Source of the DNA: Sminthopsis crassicaudata
Lineage: Eukaryota
Length of the DNA: 64,000 bases
Direction of reading: 5' to 3'
Assembly (NCBI RefSeq): GCF_048593235.1
Contig: NC_133622.1
Span: forward strand, 251,104,055-251,168,054
Shown: positions 3,201 through 11,700 of the stretch, piece by piece
Layout of the letters: each line of letters starts with the position of its first letter
Numbering within the stretch: the first letter of the stretch is position 1
Notes under the pieces: model-generated
Database searches by the model: none
Told to the model about the DNA's origin: nothing
Seen by the model: only the letters and a program-made list of their open reading frames with translations
Position numbers and translations under genes: made by a program

Positions 3201-4896
3201 CAGGACATGGCTGATTAAATCGGCGTCACTAGGACATAGAGATGGCACAAGCTTGACAAGTCCTGGGCTCTTGGAGCAGAACAATGAGGACTTGGAATCC
3301 AATTCCTTCATTTCAGAGAAGAGGAAACGGAGGCCCAGGGCCTGAAAGGTCACACATCATCCCAGAAGCAAAGCCGGGATTTGAACTCCAGACTCCTGAT
3401 TAGAGACTCTCAACTTTCTTTCCAACAGATTCCACTGCAAATGCCATATTCTGAATAATGTATTGGAATATGGAGAGGGCTTTAGAAGGGGCAGATTAAG
3501 TGCTGGCAATTGAGGAAAGTTCTACAAAAGGCAGTTTCCATTCAGACAATCCCAAGGACCAGAATCAAGCTATCCTCATCATTCCCACCCTGGGATAATG
3601 GTTCCAGCAGGGGGCAGCACCAAGGACCAATGTGGCTACTTAGGGGAACATTGGATGCACTTACAGGGCTTTGGCTGGAGGCTCCTTTCCCCTTGTGTGG
3701 CCTTCCTTTGCTGGGGTTACTCTGCCGATCATTGGACAATTGTAGGATGCTGGATTAGGCAGTTGGTAAATCAGAAAAGCAAAGCTTGATACTCCCTGGG
3801 GCCAGGGAATCTCAGAATGCTGGGCTGCCATCCCAGCAAGGCGGTGATCTGTGGAAAGGAGGAAAACAGTGTCTTTGGCATTTGTGTTTTTGAATTCTTG
3901 CTAATTAATGTTCAGTGAGCTTTTTGTCTATCTGGTGAGTGGTTTATGCCCACCTTCCTCTTGCCCCGCAGGACTGGAGAGGCAGCAGGGGACTGGAGTG
4001 CCCAGAAAGATGTGGATGGGGAACAGTAGGCACAAAAGTACGATCCAAAGGGAAGGAGAAAGAAGGCAAAAGGACCAAAAGATTTTGCAAAAGTGTATAT
4101 GGAAAACTATCTTTGCATGTATTTGGACCTATTAAAAAAAAAAAAAAAAAGAAAGAAAGAAGGCGAAAGGGACTAATGGCCAGCTTTGGTTTGATAAGGC
4201 ATGGAAGTATCAGGAGAAATCATCTTTTTATCAGATAAGGTCATGGGAAAATGGACCATTATCATTTTTTGTTGTTGTTGTTGAAAGAAGAGGGACTTAT
4301 TGGAAGAAAGAAGGGTGTTGAAAAGCATAGGTTAGGGAAGGTCTGTTGGGATCCCTGATGGCTCCTGGACCTGGCTAGGGATTTGTCTAAGCAGGCAGGT
4401 GCACTGGCAATGTGGGGGAGAGGAGGAGTCCCAAAGGGTAGCATTAGCTAGGGGAAGGTGGGAGGAGGCAGAGGAAGCTTCCTGATCCTCACCTTGCAGT
4501 TCTTTTATCACTTCATTCTTTCTCCTGAAGCATGCTTAGAGACATACCACCAGGCACTCCAGTCTGCAATCTTCCAGGTTTCTTCATTCTCCATTCTTTG
4601 CTTCTCTAGAATTTTCATCAGAACCTGCCTTCTCCAGGCCTGTTCTCCTTGCCCCTCATGATTCCCTTCGAAAGGCCTGGCAGATGGCATCTCCTTCCTT
4701 CTGTGTGGTCTCACTTTGGGGCACCTGTCAATAGTACTGCAGCCCCACTTTTCTGGGTCCTTTCTAGAGTCCCACATTTCCATCTTCTTCCCTTGCAAAG
4801 CCCCCATCAAGTCCATTCTTTCTAAGTTCCCCCACCCCTAATGGCTCGATGCCTTCCTTCATGCCACTGGTTGCTTCAGCCATAATCTCTCTCCCT

Positions 4897-7356
4897 CTAT
4901 CCCCCTTCAGGCTCCTTCTCCCCCTCTCCTCCTTCAGGCTCCTTCTCCCCCTCTCCTCCTTCAGGCTCCTTCTTCCCCTCTTCCCCTTCAGGCTCCTTCT
5001 CTCCCTCTCCCACTTTCTCCCCACCCTGGGGGACCTCCTTCTTTTCCTCAGCCCCTTGACCAGGCTGCTCCCCTTCCATCATTTCTTGGGCTTTTACAGG
5101 GCTCGTCTTCCTGCTGGCTTCCTCTCCTTCGCTGGCTATGTTGGCTGTGTTATCTGTGGCGTCCTCAAAGTTGGCTTCTGAGAATTGTGTCTCAATCTTT
5201 TTGGGAAGGTTACCTTCCTCAGCAGATACTGATTTCTTCTTTTCGTACTCTTCTGACCCTTCTTCTTTTGGAAGTCCCTCAGTCATTTCCTGGTCTTCGC
5301 TCTTTTGCTTGGCGACCCCTTCAATCACTAGCCATAAGGCCTGGCCATGGTCCAGGGGCTCATCGCCTTCAGGAGTCCTCACACCTAGAGTCTGCTCATC
5401 TTCTGTTGCCAGAAGCTGCTCAAGTTCTGTTCCTGAGGTCAGCTCGCCTTCTGTTCCTGAGGTCACCTGGCCTTCTAGCCCGGAGGTCAGCTCATCTTCT
5501 GCCCCTGGAGTCACCTGGCCTTCTGGGCCAGAGGTCAGCTCCTCTTCTGCTGCTGAGGCCTGCTGGCCTTCTGCCTCTGAGGTCAGTTCACCTTCTGCCG
5601 CTGAGGCCTGCTGGCCTTCTGCCTCTGAGATCAGCTCACCTTCTGGCCCTGAGATCCGCTCGCCTTCTGGCCCTGAGGTTGGACGGCCTTCTGCTTCTGA
5701 GGTCAGATCCTCTGCCTCTGAGGTCGGCTGCTCTTCTGCCTCTGAGGTTTGCGGGCCTTCTGGCCCTGAGGTCTCCTCCCCTTCTGCTCCTGAGATCTCC
5801 TTGCCTTGGGCCTCTAAGATCTCCTCATCTTGGACCTCTAAGATCTCCTCATCTTGGGCCTCTAAGATCTCTTCATCTTGGGCCTCTAAGATCTGCTTGC
5901 CTTCTGTCTCTGAGGTCTCCATTTCTACCCCTGAGGTCTGCTTGCTTTCTGACTCTGAGGTCTCCTCCTGTACCCCTGGAGTCTGCTGGCCTGACCTTGA
6001 AGACCGCCTGCTTTCTGCCCTTGAGGACCGCTTGCTTTCTGGCCCTGAGGACCGCTTGCTTTCTGTCCCTGAGGGCCGCCTACTTTCCACAAGTGAGGGC
6101 CTCCTGCTTTCCACAAGTGAGGGCCTCCTGCTTTCCACAAGCGAGGGCCTCCTGCTTTCCACAAGCGAGGGCCTCCTGCTTTCCACAACCGAGGACCTCC
6201 TGCTTTCCACAACTGAGGGCCTCCTGCTTTCCACAACCGAGGGCCTCCTGCTTTCCATAACCGAGGGCCTCCTGCTTTCCACAACTGAGGGCCGCTTGCT
6301 CTCTGAAACCGAGGGCCGCTTGCTCTCTGAAACCGAGGGCCGCCTGCTTGCTGCCCCCGAGGGCACCTTGCTTTCTACAGTGGAGGTATCCTCACTTTCA
6401 GGGGCGCCTTCTGTTCCCGAGGTCTGTTGGCCTACCCCCGGAGTCAGTTCTTCTGCAGCTGGGGTCTGCTCTCCTTGTACACTCGGGGCCTTGTCGAGTT
6501 CAGTGGCGGGGGTCTTCTCACTTTCTGACCTAGTAGCCTTCCGTGGATGCTCCACTTCTGCCTGGGCAGCTTCAGCCGTGGGAGGATGCTCTATTGGCCC
6601 GGCAGCTCCGGTCTCTGAGGGAAGATGCCCTTCTTCTGGCCAGGCAGCCATCGAAGGATGCTTCTCTTCAGCCATGGAGGGATGGGCTGTGACAGTTTCA
6701 GCCACAGAGGGATGCTTCTCTTCGGCCCTGGCAGCTCCAGCCACAGAGGGATGCTTCTCTTCGGCCCTGGCAGCTCCAGCCACAGAGGGATGCTTCTCTT
6801 CGGCCCTGGCAGCTCCAGCCACAGAGGGATGCTTCTCTTCGGCCCTGGCAGCCTGTGGTGTCTTGATTGGTTGTGGCTGGCCGCCGCTCTCCTCCCCGCT
6901 GAGCTCCCGTCCGGCGGGGCCTTCGGTGGACTCCTTGGAAGCAGGTGAGGGTGGTGGGGGTGGCGGGGCTGCTGGGTGGGCCGGCACCTTCGTTTGGGGC
7001 TTCAAGCTGTGGCCCCGCACCTGCAGCGGCTCCCAGCTGAACCACAGCTTCTCGTGCAGGATCTTCACGCATTTCCGGGACTTGGGACCCCTGCCCGGGG
7101 ATCTGGACTGGGGCTGGGTCGGGGACGGCGAGCGGGAGGGCAGCTTCTTGACCTGCAGGGTGTCCCGGATCCTGTCGGCCTCAGGGATGACGCTGGCCCA
7201 CGGCGGCAGCTTTGGCCGCGTCCGGCCCTGCTGTCGGCTCGCCAAGCGGCGGCCCTTCCCCTGCACCGGGAGGCGGCGGCGGAGGTAGCCACGGGCGCGC
7301 GTCGAGGGCCGCAGGCCCGGCCGTTTGGCTCCCCCGGCCCAGGGCGAGGGCTGCAT
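4897..7356 (-). CDS. Uncharacterised intronless acidic, repeat-rich protein of 819 aa from the ATG at 7356; the frame stays open to 7746
   Basis: The frame is stop-free for 2850 nt and ends in TAG at 4897-4899. All internal repeat periods are multiples of 3 (39, 24, 24 and 27 nt). Composition is E/S/G/A/P-rich after a basic non-repetitive N-terminus. The 5' end lies in a CpG island. Confidence 0.7.
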   Translation of the reverse strand: MQPSPWAGGAKRPGLRPSTRARGYLRRRLPVQGKGRRLASRQQGRTRPKLPPWASVIPEADRIRDTLQVKKLPSRSPSPTQPQSRSPGRGPKSRKCVKILHEKLWFSWEPLQVRGHSLKPQTKVPAHPAAPPPPPPSPASKESTEGPAGRELSGEESGGQPQPIKTPQAARAEEKHPSVAGAARAEEKHPSVAGAARAEEKHPSVAGAARAEEKHPSVAETVTAHPSMAEEKHPSMAAWPEEGHLPSETGAAGPIEHPPTAEAAQAEVEHPRKATRSESEKTPATELDKAPSVQGEQTPAAEELTPGVGQQTSGTEGAPESEDTSTVESKVPSGAASRRPSVSESKRPSVSESKRPSVVESRRPSVMESRRPSVVESRRPSVVESRRSSVVESRRPSLVESRRPSLVESRRPSLVESRRPSLVESRRPSGTESKRSSGPESKRSSRAESRRSSRSGQQTPGVQEETSESESKQTSGVEMETSETEGKQILEAQDEEILEAQDEEILEVQDEEILEAQGKEISGAEGEETSGPEGPQTSEAEEQPTSEAEDLTSEAEGRPTSGPEGERISGPEGELISEAEGQQASAAEGELTSEAEGQQASAAEEELTSGPEGQVTPGAEDELTSGLEGQVTSGTEGELTSGTELEQLLATEDEQTLGVRTPEGDEPLDHGQALWLVIEGVAKQKSEDQEMTEGLPKEEGSEEYEKKKSVSAEEGNLPKKIETQFSEANFEDATDNTANIASEGEEASRKTSPVKAQEMMEGEQPGQGAEEKKEVPQGGEKVGEGEKEPEGEEGKKEPEGGEGEKEPEGGEGEKEPEGG
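4904..5010 (-). repeat. 27-bp coding tandem repeat x4 (GEKEPEGGE)
   Basis: Unit ccttcaggctccttctccccctctcct starts at 4904, 4931, 4958 and 4985. Confidence 0.9.
5998..6348 (-). repeat. 24-bp coding tandem repeat x15 (ES[RK]R[PS]Sxx)
   Basis: The translation SRRPSVSESKRPSVSESKRPSVVESRRPSVME...ESRRSSR contains 11 RRxS and 4 KRxS motifs. Confidence 0.95.
6699..6852 (-). repeat. 39-bp coding tandem repeat x4 (AARAEEKHPSVAG)
   Basis: Near-identical units start at 6699, 6738, 6777 and 6816, with degenerate copies toward 6640. Confidence 0.95.
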
Positions 7357-8700
7357 CCACGGGTCGATGCTCCACCAGCTCTGAGGGGTCAAGCGCTCCT
7401 CTTCGGCCGCCAGCCTCCGGCCCCACACGGCCACGCCCCGCTGCCGGACCGAAGCGCGGCGGCTGTAGCCTTGGTGCCGGCAGCTGGGGCCCGTATCCCA
7501 GCGCCAGGTGCCCGCCTCCCCGCCCCAGGGCCACGGCCACACCCGCACCCAGGCCAGTCGCCCAGGCCTCCAGCCCAGGCACACCCTTATCCTCCACCCC
7601 GTCGTCTGCGCCCGCCCGCCCCGGCATCGGACCCGGCGACGCCCCCTCCCCCGCCCCAGCCCCAGCGCTCCCCCAGTCCCGCCCTCGCCCCGCCCCTGAT
7701 CCGCCCGCGGACCCGCCCCCGGCCTCCCTGCCCTCCGCCAGCCCAAAGGCGTGGGGCTGGAGGGCGGAGGGGCGGCGCAGGCGCAGCAGCTCGAGGCCCG
7801 CTGCGCGCCCCGCCCCTGCGCCGAGGGGAGGGGCTACGCCTGCGCACCAGCTGCTTGCTCTGGGCGCTCCGGGACAAAGGCGAGCGAAGGGGCGGGGCGA
7901 GAGATGGGCCCTGGGGGCCGGGGAGAGCCGGGACTGTTTTGTTATTCGCTGGGCGTCCCCAGAGCCTAGTAGCGTGCATGACCGTTAGCAGGTGCTTTAT
8001 TAAGTACTGTTCAATAATGCTCGTGCAATGATTGACGAGGAGGGGAGGAATGGGGTTGGGGCGCAAGAGAGGAGGGACGGAATGAAGGGGATGGGGACTT
8101 AGCGGAAAAGAGCCTTGAGGCGTGGGAACCGGCCTGCTCGGTGGGAGCTGCCCGACTAGCGCTTCGACTCCAGCCCCTCTCGGCCGTCTCCCCCGCTCTC
8201 TGAGACCCGCATTCTCCCTTAAGAGGCGGTGCCCGCTGCCGGGAAAGACGGACGGACAGGCCAATGAAAGCACGGAGGCCGGGCCCTCCGTCCATTCAGA
8301 GCGCACTAGGGGCGGAGCCTCGCGGTCTACGCCTCTCTCTAAACTACTCTCCCGAGGGCGCGGGTGGAAGACTGGGCCGGCGCGGTCCCTGCAGGCTCCA
8401 TTCATTCTTCATCTGGGCAGGGCGGGGGAGGAGGGCTGCAGGGGTGGCGAGCGTCTCCCAGGGCCGGGGAAGGGGTCGCGGCGGACGGAGCGCCCAGGCG
8501 GCGGGAAGCGAGCCCTCGTCCTCCCTTTCGTAGGAGCAGAAAAGTGGAGGTGCAAGAGGACCTGTGATGGAGGAGAATCCCGACCCTGGGGAGGAGCGCC
8601 AGGTAACGGGAGGGACGGATGGGGAAGAGGGACGGCCGGAGGGAGGGAGGGATGGGGAGAGAGGTTCATGGGGGGAGAGAGGGTGTGGGGCCGCCTCCTG
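6900..8700. promoter_or_regulatory. CpG island and divergent promoter region between the orphan ORF and SNX32
   Basis: Very high GC and CpG density, multiple GGGCGG boxes, and an NRF1-like GCGCAGGCGC near 7780. Confidence 0.7.
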
Positions 8701-11700
8701 CTAGCAGAGAATGGGAAGGGCCCTGAACAGGCAGAGCGTGAGGGCCGGGGCAGCTCTCTCCCAGGGAAGGGGGGGAGTCACGGAGGACCTCGGCCGTCCC
8801 TAGCCCAGGCTCAGTTTACAGATCAGGCTCGGAGAGTCGGTGTGCTCAAAGCCAGGCAAGAGGAAATCAGCAGAGCCACGCGTGGCCCCCACAGCTCTGG
8901 CTCCCGCTCTTTGCTCCTCCCTCCTCCTGAGTCACTCACAACCTGTGAGGGAAACCTGAGTGACCTATGGGACCCCCGGGATCCCACCCTCCCACCTCTG
9001 CTGCCTTCTCCTCAGGCCGCTCCCAGCTGTGTGTCCGTGGGTGTCCGTGGGTGTGTCCATGTGTGTGTCTGTGTGTCCGTCCATGTGTGTCCGTGTCAGT
9101 AATCCGTGTGTGTGTCCATGTATGTCCATCCCTGTGTGTCCGTGCGTGTCCGTGTGTGTGTCTGTGTGTCCGTCCATGTGTGTCCGTGTCCGTAATCTGT
9201 GTGTGTGTCCATGTATGTCCATCCCTGTGTGTCCGTGCGTGTCCGTGTGTGTCCGTGTGCGTGTCCGTGGGTGAGTGTCCATGCAGACAGGCAGAGCGCA
9301 GCGGCTGACAGCAGGCCTAGCTGGTCTCCAGGGACCTTGCCTTGTACTGACCGTCACAGAGAGAACAGACCGAGGGACACAGACGGAGGAGGGAGGTCAG
9401 GAGAGAGGCAATCTCCTGGTGGCTGGAGAAGTCAGAACCGTTCTCAGAACAGGAGCCAAAGTTGAGCCGACCAAGTCTCCCCAGAGCAGACAGACACACA
9501 GGGCCCTGGACGGGTCGCAAGACATGGAGAGCAATTGAAACCAGTCTGGTCCAACTAGAAGTTATTGATGGCCCACGTAGGCTGCCATTGGGGTGGGTCT
9601 TGGGGGCGCTGCCCCGGGTGTGTTTCTGTACGTGTGAAGAGGACTGGGCTCTCTAAGTTGCAGCACAGCCCCCTGGCTGAGTTTGGGGGGCGAGCCCCCC
9701 TTCTGCGGGCTGCTCTTTTCCATCCCTAATGAACACCTTGGCTGGTGGGATTCCTTAGTCTATCAGGGAGCATTCCTCAAACCCCTGCCCGCTGTGCCAA
9801 GGACTTCCCGTCCACGGACAAAGTGGAATCTTGTGTCCTTTGACAAGCTTTGAGGGGCTTGAAAAATGGGGAGGGGTTAGAGCTGGGAGGTCCAGCTTGA
9901 GGCCAGACAGGATCCACAGCGGCCTCCAGGTGAGAGGGAAGAGGCCAGTTGTTCCACCACAAAAGGTCACCCTTCCCCTTGGGCCAGGAGAGCTTCCCCC
10001 CTCCATGTCATGGTCTCTGTCATGGAGAGGGCTTCAAGGAAGAAGGAAGAATACCACCCATCTGTGTCCTCCGTTTTGATTGGAAACTTTCACAGACACA
10101 GATCTTTGTGGAAGCCTTCCTGGTGGGTCTCTGGCTAATCATACCCATTTCACAGATGAGAAGGCTGACAGATGTGGAAAGGGAACTGCCCTGGAAGGCT
10201 TGGCTCCTGACAGTGGGTCTTTATTTATATAGCTCTTTCAATATACTCTGAACTTTGACCTCCTATCTCCGGGGAGCCCCACTCAGTGGTGTAAGGTGAA
10301 TAATGCAGAGACCTCAGCTCCCCAAGCCAGCCTCTAGGATCCAGGTCTCCCCACCAGTTCCCTGCCGGAAAGCCAGCTTGACCCCGGACGGACAGCCGGC
10401 CTCCTGAGTGAGGGAAGGGGAGTCCTAGGAGCACGGACCGGTTTCGTGTTCATTTCTGAAGGAGGATGTTCTCGGGTCATTCTGGAGACTCGGGGCCACA
10501 TGAGTGATAGGGCAGGAGCAGTGAGGACACAGTAAGCTTGAGGAACACGAGTCCCAAAGTGGGACAGGATCCGAGGCCCCAGCCCAGCCCCACTGCTTTG
10601 GTGACTGTGGCCAAGGGCCTGAGAGGGCCTTTTTAGGGGCTTTGCTGGAAGGATTCTTAGGCGCGGGGGAGCGGTGGGCAAGGAGGCCAGGGGCCAACCC
10701 CGCTGTTTCCATGGGTCTGCAGGGAGATGGCGCCTTGCAGGTGGAGATCTCTGATGCCGTGAGTGAGAGGGACAAGGTGAAATTCACGGTTCACACCAAG
10801 GTGAGGTCGCCACTTCCCCAAATGGAGACTGGTTCCGAGGGTCAGGGGCCCGGACAAACAGATTCAGCCCCCACGTACTTTAGGAAACTCCTTCTCTAGC
10901 AGAGCCCTGTGTGGTTTCCAGCTTCCTGCAGTCTCCTCCAATCGCACCCTGGGTTCTGGCTCCCAGCCCCAAGCCCCATGGGATTGTGGGAAGCATCCCA
11001 GAGCAGAGCAGGGGGGAGGAGGATGTGTTGGGAGTCCGGCAGGGAGCGAGGTGGCCAGGGCGCCTCAGTGGGGAACCCTTCCTTTCAGAGCTGCCTCCCC
11101 CACTTCAGCCAGACTGAGTTCTCCGTCGTCAGGCAACACGAGGAGTTCATCTGGCTCCACGATGCTTACACCGACAACGAGGACTATGCGGGCATCATTG
11201 TGAGGCACTGGACTCGGACCCCGGGAGCTGGCAGGGATCCCCTGGAGGCCAAGTGCAGCTGGGAAGGGAGGAGGTGGACCGGGCTCCGGGAGCCCACTGG
11301 ATACGGCCTTCTTAGCTCCTTTCTGTTTTGAGCAGATCCCCCCGGCTCCTCCCAAACCAGACTTTGAGGCTTCAAGGGAAAAGCTGCAGAGGCTGGGGGA
11401 GGGGGACAGCTCAGTCACCAGGGAAGAGTTTGCCAAAATGAAGCAAGAACTAGAGGGGTAAGACACTCCCTCCCCTCCTTCATTCACCCCCTCACCCCTC
11501 AACTCCCCATTTCCAGGGGTGTGGTATAGTGATTGGGGAGGTCTGGCACCAGGAAGCCCCAAGTTCTAGTCTGCAGCGGTCACCAATCCTTTCTCCTCTC
11601 TGGCCTTTGACCTTTCTCACAGAGGGGCTAGCCAAGGCTCCTCCATCACAAAGCACTCGGGGAGTCCCTGAGGCCCGGGGAAGGCTCCCGTCCCACGGGA

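Follow-up and report, generated by a model that had tools for sequence, protein, structure and literature searches.

A tandem array of RRxS octapeptides in a marsupial orphan gene, probably expanded from an acidic coding repeat

Do fifteen consecutive matches to the recognition motif of cyclic AMP (cAMP)-dependent protein kinase (PKA) mark a phosphorylation switch, or do they record the way in which a coding repeat has grown? The question is raised by a 64,000-nucleotide stretch of the genome of the dunnart Sminthopsis crassicaudata (contig NC_133622.1, positions 251,104,055 to 251,168,054 of the forward strand), which we call the window and number from its first letter. Its minus strand contains a long open reading frame whose predicted product carries a tandem array of basic, serine-rich octapeptides. 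We favour the second answer: the array is probably a lineage-specific coding minisatellite within exon 1 of a marsupial orphan gene, born by expansion of one mutated acidic unit. The observation that drew attention to the array is confirmed, and the interpretation placed on it holds for the motif chemistry, without support for the sperm and cAMP biology. On present evidence, the array takes its place among many low-complexity expansions specific to single lineages.

Structure of the array

Two features of the window are central to what follows.

5989 to 6348, minus strand: basic array of 15 in-frame 24-bp units, translated as S-[R/K]-R-[P/S]-S-x-x-E; residues 337-456 of the 819-residue predicted product.
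4897 to 7356, minus strand: open reading frame of 819 codons followed by a TAG stop (4899-4897), with the first ATG in the observed transcript (7356) as its start.

An earlier reading made from the letters of the window (the sequence-only reading) described 15 tandem octapeptides at 5998-6348 with 11 RRxS and four KRxS motifs. Translation of the minus strand reproduces these counts: the reverse complement of that interval, in frame 0, gives SRRPSVSE SKRPSVSE SKRPSVVE SRRPSVME and so on to SKRSSRAE SRRSS, and the true borders of the array lie at 5989-6348 (15 x 24 bp). Arginine is found at position -2 of the acceptor serine in every unit, and position -3 is R in 11 and K in four. The V or L noted at +1 in 11 of the 15 units is recovered as well (V in seven, L in four), and the units with G (two) or R (two) at this position are the four at the 3' edge of the array. 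A second serine does occur at -4 in all units, as had been said, but the acidic E attributed to each of them ends only 14, the last unit ending in G.

The array contains 32 K/R, 14 E and 37 S in 120 residues and has a net charge of +18. From the composition of the 819-residue product only 0.9 [RK]RxS motifs would be expected, and the maximum in 2000 shuffles was five; the 15 observed all fall within the array, with none elsewhere in the product. This excess counts as about one event rather than 15, because it stems from amplification of a single unit, and the 15 "sites" are copies of one invention, not independent sites. Central units 3-10 are 93% identical, compared with a mean of 76% over all units. 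Tandem Repeats Finder assigns 5991-6376 a period of 24, together with higher-order periods of 48 and 72. With 15 units of period 24 lying in frame within exon 1, the array has the form of a coding minisatellite.

Probable origin from an acidic repeat

A second family of octapeptides lies next to the basic array in the same frame.

5433 to 5967, minus strand: acidic 24-bp (8-residue) repeat family, with units including TSEAEGxx, SGPEGExx and ILEAQDEE.

The Tandem Repeats Finder consensus 24-mers of the basic and acidic families match at 17 of 24 bases at rotation 6, in the same codon phase; shuffled sequences gave a mean of 11.5 matches, and none of 5000 reached 17. Six codons, each changed at a single base, separate the acidic unit S-E-A-E-G-Q-Q-A (TCA GAG GCA GAA GGC CAG CAG GCC) from the edge unit S-G-T-E-S-K-R-S, and 4 of the 24 bases distinguish SGPEGERI from SGPESKRS. 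In the wombat protein described below, SGPESEKTP aligns to dunnart SGPESKRSS. Judged from these alignments, the basic array and the acidic repeats appear to descend from a common 24-bp ancestor.

The simplest course of events that would account for the array is as follows. An acidic octapeptide unit, similar to dunnart SGPEGERI or wombat SGPESEKT, would have gained K/R by a few point mutations to give the edge unit SGPESKRS. The mutated unit would then have been amplified to 15 copies, and the central units would have drifted toward S-R-R-P-S-[V/L]-V-E. Two residues, the E at +3 and the acceptor serine, would have come down from the older repeat skeleton.

A wombat orthologue without the array

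A phmmer search against 1.84 billion representative proteins returned 313 matches at E <= 0.001. Nearly all of the 150 matches listed for inspection are confined to residues ~330-440, which is the repeat itself. One of them (P0005) also matched residues 522-791 and, in local BLAST comparisons of the unique N- and C-terminal regions, was the sole relative among the 150 matches listed. It is the 591-residue Vombatus ursinus protein XP_027711924.1, which carries the RefSeq name "retinitis pigmentosa 1-like 1 protein". The wombat gene is arranged head-to-head with a PX/Vps5 (SNX32) gene and lies next to cofilin (CFL1), and the dunnart window has the same synteny. BLASTP aligns the two proteins collinearly at 33-43% identity, and they share, in order, QSWWS(I/V)(D/E)PW, KGRRL, SWEPL.V.G.SL, PPPPPPS, PAGREL, the 8-residue repeat core, KS.S.E.GNL, EMM.GEQ..QGAEE and a terminal EKEPEGG. 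We consider XP_027711924.1 to be the orthologue because it combines the same locus position with a collinear alignment and a shared end.

The two proteins differ where the array would be expected. The wombat repeats are ~16 acidic or neutral octapeptides (GAEGEKTP, GTEGEQTR), and the wombat protein has no basic RRxS array, only three scattered [RK]Rx[ST] motifs, and no counterpart of a 39-bp repeat found in the dunnart frame. Free loss of RRxS among orthologues had been named as evidence that would speak against a kinase switch, and the sole orthologue obtained does lack the array, with acidic repeats at that place. To judge from this pair, the array appears either to be confined to the dunnart lineage or to have been lost on the way to wombat. 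Similarity to wombat also runs upstream of the dunnart ATG, at 7357-7480 on the minus strand (QSWWSIDPW in dunnart, QSWWSVEPW in wombat). Either the true start codon is uncertain, or 7357-7480 may be a conserved element of the 5' untranslated region or promoter.

The dunnart and wombat genes both have SNX32, CFL1 and MUS81 as neighbours. Human RP1L1 is located elsewhere in the genome. We rejected RP1L1 identity for this gene on the basis of the wrong locus and of the missing DCX domain: no Pfam family matches the dunnart frame at E <= 1, and the wombat protein has no precomputed Pfam domain. The wombat RefSeq name is a misnomer, a low-complexity artefact of the Glu-rich repeats, and so is wrong for the gene family; the dunnart gene is apparently absent from the protein collections searched. 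Further searches produced no additional relatives. The 949-codon stop-free frame that contains the open reading frame matched no Pfam family, word-indexed homology searches with the whole frame and with unique residues 655-790 found no relatives, and the same type of search with the wombat protein returned that protein alone, with low-complexity words saturating the candidate list. An ESM Atlas feature search gave no usable match, and a limited literature search found no paper on the gene family. As far as these searches reach, the gene is probably a fast-evolving orphan found only in marsupials.

Transcription and coding potential

The frame lies within a spliced transcript with the following features.

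4493 to 7604, minus strand: exon 1, from contigs of the RNA-like runs X5 and X6, with a splice donor after 4493 (caag/gtgagg, the slash marking the joint); the 5' end is approximate, as contigs stop at 7534 and 7604.
3849 to 4492, minus strand: 644-bp intron with GT..AG borders, lying past the stop codon and without cover in the RNA-like runs.
3665 to 3848, minus strand: exon 2 of 184 bp, followed by a GT donor after 3665, from RNA-like contigs and the sequence.

Contigs from X5 and X6, which belong to two different studies, span 4493-7604; none extends beyond ~7604, and none falls in 3885-4475 except for a repeat. They splice 4493 to 3848, where CT..AC on the plus strand corresponds to GT..AG on the minus strand, with the acceptor tttccacag/atc. 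We read these two runs as RNA because a canonical splice joint combined with an empty intron is the signature of RNA. Run X5 is labelled as another organism and is otherwise identical in sequence. In runs X1 and X7 the cover is even across intron and intergenic DNA, and we treated both as DNA-like rather than counting them as expression. The array gene is transcribed, and it is spliced on the strand of the frame; runs from at least five studies contain its contigs. The whole frame sits in the first exon of ~3.1 kb, and at least two further exons follow. A search for the third exon with its 30-mer found no copy within the window. Exon 2 is itself open in one frame throughout (61 codons, with an internal ATG giving MAAQHSEIPW...), and this frame could continue into exon 3.

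The minus-strand frame has no stop from 7746 to 4897 (949 codons). Over 7356-4897, composition predicts ~25 stops, and the other two sense frames contain 28 and 32, compared with zero in this one. The frame is more open than composition explains, and it is also kept in the wombat lineage. One antisense frame is open for 742 codons, and the sense strand is just 12% T. The coding strand needed independent evidence because this antisense frame is nearly open too. Two observations led us to reject a plus-strand frame of 716 residues rich in Ser, Pro and Leu (5138-7288): read on the minus strand, the splice sites have the GT..AG form, and it is the product of that strand that aligns with the wombat orthologue. 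This 716-codon frame and a second antisense frame, open for 357 codons, are a consequence of the T-poor sense strand and do not indicate a second gene.

Repeats make up much of the frame, and the periods of all six families within it (27, 24, 45, 117, 72/48 and 39) are divisible by 3. Besides the two octapeptide families, they include the following.

6699 to 6852, minus strand: 39-bp repeat, 3.9 copies at 100% identity, encoding AGAARAEEKHPSV.
4890 to 5015, minus strand: C-terminal 27-bp repeat (GEGEKEPEG), with one unit absent, in frame, in run X5.

The missing unit is the sole indel seen, a 27-bp copy-number variant at 4904-4930 that leaves the frame intact by removing one GEGEKEPEG.

Possible constraint on the array codons

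The sequence-only reading had suggested that the R-R-x-S positions might be kept while spacer codons vary, and between units this pattern is present. Across 105 unit pairs, the first serine, the R at unit position 3 and the acceptor serine at position 5 differ only synonymously (AGC/AGT, CGG/AGG and TCG/TCA, respectively). The five skeleton codons have proportions of synonymous (pS) and nonsynonymous (pN) differences of 0.46 and 0.05, compared with 0.33 and 0.44 for positions 4, 6 and 7. A rough estimate of the probability that this codon pattern arose by chance is ~0.01-0.02. Skeleton invariance across units despite codon change suggests that there may be some selection on S, R, S and E.

Several observations weigh against a selected kinase substrate and, more generally, against a translated product. 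The codon pattern rests on ~4-5 independent mutations, few because the TCG/TCA pattern tracks the 72-bp higher-order repeat. It is as strong for the S at -4 and the E at +3, which are dispensable for PKA, and their invariance does not point specifically to a kinase motif, since the acidic units conserve S and E too. In run X7, all four single-nucleotide polymorphisms in the open reading frame are nonsynonymous (5202, K>E; 5629, I>M; 6464, T>I; 6590, E>G), which suggests weak constraint on the unique regions, and by our estimate near-neutral drift would yield roughly the 33-43% identity seen with wombat. No ATG is common to the dunnart and wombat proteins, and the start-codon contexts are weak for both candidate ATGs. 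The TAG stop precedes the exon junction by 404 nt, and the sequence from one to the other contains neither AATAAA nor ATTAAA, a layout that fits a nonsense-mediated-decay target or a non-coding RNA and leaves protein output uncertain. The RNA status of X5 and X6 is a tool's guess ("RNA?"), and no run is recorded as RNA. None of four start variants has an exact match in a collection of 15 billion proteins, and translation of the frame is a prediction.

Some of these points would also be expected of a non-coding or barely translated RNA from a divergent promoter, the frame of which is open through purine-rich, T-poor repeats and the array of which has no protein-level function. The position of the stop upstream of a splice junction with at least two further exons, the low T content with its long antisense frame, the lack of a Pfam family, a homologue in one species alone, the nonsynonymous polymorphisms and the absence of the exact protein from the collection are all consistent with such an RNA. 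It does not readily explain why two sense frames of equal composition are closed by 28 and 32 stops, why every repeat period is divisible by 3 and the observed indel is in frame, or why the invariant array residues vary synonymously only. The frame, the N-terminal motifs and the exact C-terminal end are moreover kept in wombat, a member of another marsupial order. On balance we consider a non-coding RNA unlikely and prefer a coding minisatellite in an orphan gene.

Predicted product, kinase motif and charge

A single-sequence AlphaFold2 model of the product has a mean predicted local distance difference test score (pLDDT) of 38.6, with helices predicted solely at residues 485-520 (the ILEAQDEE repeats) and 670-693. 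Array residues 337-456 have a pLDDT of about 30-36 and no secondary structure in this model, which is weak evidence for disorder. The first ~100 residues after the first ATG carry a charge of ~+20 and the C-terminal half ~-80, and the array lies between a mildly acidic region and that half. The array had been called the only basic island in a long acidic region; this description is apt for its contrast with the C-terminal half (+18 against ~-80) but overlooks an N-terminus that is likewise strongly basic. The 819-residue product would thus probably be largely disordered and composed of charge blocks, with a basic N-terminus, a mildly acidic middle, the basic serine-rich array and a very acidic half.

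The classical PKA motif has R at -3 and -2 and a large hydrophobic residue at +1 (PMC1783638), and the PKA-consensus match claimed for the units is sound by this definition, with R at -2 throughout, R or K at -3 and V or L at +1 in 11 of 15. The proposed reversal of charge by full phosphorylation is also correct as arithmetic, going from +18 to ~-12 with 15 phosphates. However, RRxS is a generic basophilic-kinase motif, and PKA is one of several kinases that might act on it. The spacing within each unit also matches S-x-x-E (CK2-like) and S-x-x-x-S (GSK3-priming). If the frame is translated, the exposed RRxS serines would be plausible targets of basophilic kinases, and phosphorylation would abolish whatever electrostatic pairing the array might have with acidic blocks or nucleic acid. 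A fuller version of this mechanism, in which a disordered marsupial charge-block protein gained a basophilic-kinase multisite charge switch (+18 to ~-12) in the dunnart lineage, with its skeleton held by selection, and uses it to control pairing with its own acidic repeats, seems to us quite unlikely.

The array might instead act through its basic charge or Arg-Ser character. It could be an RS-like or nucleic-acid-binding block, a signal for nuclear or nucleolar targeting, or a cationic partner of the protein's own acidic blocks in a charge-patterned condensate former, and any phosphorylation would then be by SRPK/CLK, CK2 or GSK3-type kinases. Such roles would draw on 32 K/R and 37 S in 120 residues between flanking blocks of -50 to -80 net charge, on the S-x-x-E and S-x-x-x-S spacing in each unit and on skeleton S and E residues that come from the acidic family and are older than the RR. 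There are no alternating RS dipeptide runs, however, and no RRM or other RNA-binding domain accompanies the array. We find this family of explanations decidedly improbable.

The sequence-only reading went further and proposed a dedicated multisite PKA substrate, a cAMP-driven charge switch in sperm with ultrasensitive or rheostat-like behaviour and a gain set by repeat copy number. An R/K-R-x-S motif in 15 of 15 units, 11 of them with V or L at +1 in agreement with the published motif (PMC1783638), is what such a substrate would require, and the charge arithmetic, the predicted disorder of the array and the invariance of the acceptor S and the R at -2 amid synonymous codon variation are compatible with it. 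There is also a precedent for a disordered region with multiple PKA sites in CFTR (PMC4160016, PMC8240754). Yet nothing in our analysis ties the gene to sperm, testis or cAMP; its promoter is a CpG island shared with SNX32, and its contigs turn up in the runs of five or more studies. The wombat orthologue lacks the array, RRxS is common to the substrates of many basophilic kinases, and no folded or effector domain on which a switch could act is recognisable in the protein. Copy-number variation of the 24-bp array was not seen in contigs that cannot resolve it, since those of all four runs break at the same places inside the array and its copies cannot be counted from them. Taken together, these considerations make a sperm PKA switch very improbable, and a lineage-specific coding minisatellite is still the reading that we prefer.

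Comparison with known systems

The nearest known example of what the sequence-only reading proposed is the R region of CFTR, which is disordered, contains many dibasic PKA sites and tunes its interactions through graded phosphorylation (PMC4160016, PMC8240754). The CFTR sites do not form a repeat, are conserved throughout the vertebrates and are tethered to the channel that they regulate, whereas those of the dunnart protein are tandem copies, specific to one lineage and associated with no recognisable effector domain. The wombat orthologue shares with the dunnart product the head-to-head locus, the collinear order of motifs and the EKEPEGG end, and differs from it in its shorter length of 591 residues, its exclusively acidic or neutral octapeptides and its lack of the RRxS array, the 39-bp repeat and the ATG.

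Several of the unnamed phmmer matches also contain octapeptide RRxS arrays: P0082 (NRRPSVDQ), P0050 (DDRRPSYN), P0130 (RRNSDADQ), P0140 (KRGSIAES) and P0118 (KRPSVQAS). These proteins likewise consist in part of tandem 8-residue basophilic-kinase units but show no relationship beyond the repeat; the unique regions of the dunnart product match none of them, and none is named or of known function. Since unrelated proteins carry such arrays, arrays of this kind arise repeatedly, and the dunnart array is not unique.

Short-motif resemblances extend to better-known proteins. The SRRPS of most units is identical to the pentapeptide Ser129-Ser133 of CREB, from the S-R-R-P-S-Y site of CREB, CREM and ATF1. 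In CREB, PKA phosphorylates the second serine of SRRPS, which primes GSK3 for the first. The likeness is limited to the short motif, as the array has no KIX-binding hydrophobic residues, no bZIP domain and no homology to these factors. The Arg-Ser (RS) domains of SR proteins, with alternating R-S beside RRMs, and the proline-directed KSP repeats of neurofilaments are also low-complexity, serine-rich and multiply phosphorylated sequences whose charge is set by kinases. Neither pattern occurs in the array, where the units hold S-R-R and R-x-S and no RRM is present.

Should the array prove to be translated and phosphorylated, it would illustrate how a module of multisite phosphorylation can arise in one lineage through mutation and then amplification of one unit of an existing coding repeat. 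It would then be a datable phospho-switch born of repeat expansion, with ancestor-like units still present next door and in wombat, and would be relevant to the evolution of disordered regions and orphan genes.

Promoter and neighbouring genes

The 5' end of the array gene faces that of its neighbour across a short interval.

7605 to 7989, no strand assigned: GC-rich interval between the 5' end of the transcript and the end of the first exon on the plus strand; presumed bidirectional promoter shared with SNX32.

The interval is a few hundred bases wide and has a GC content of 68%. On the plus strand, the first exon of the neighbouring gene is recognised from a joint from 7989 to 8532 (GT..AG); the later exons of this gene are PX exons of the SNX5/6/32 type, followed by MUS81 exons, matching the expected synteny. 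Because the divergent 5' ends of the two genes flank this GC-rich interval, we regard it as a shared bidirectional promoter. To our knowledge, the human OVOL1-SNX32 interval contains no protein-coding gene, just an antisense long non-coding RNA.

An Rfam scan of the window gave no match. A contig of run X1 over 6823-8800, which covers the CpG island, has a depth of ~108, compared with 15-30 elsewhere, and in this respect the run resembles a chromatin-enrichment library that marks an active shared promoter. In the first intron of the SNX32-like gene, a TG/CA-rich repeat at 8960-9360 has open frames on both strands (CVSVCP... and HTDTHG...) and looks like a simple-sequence artefact.

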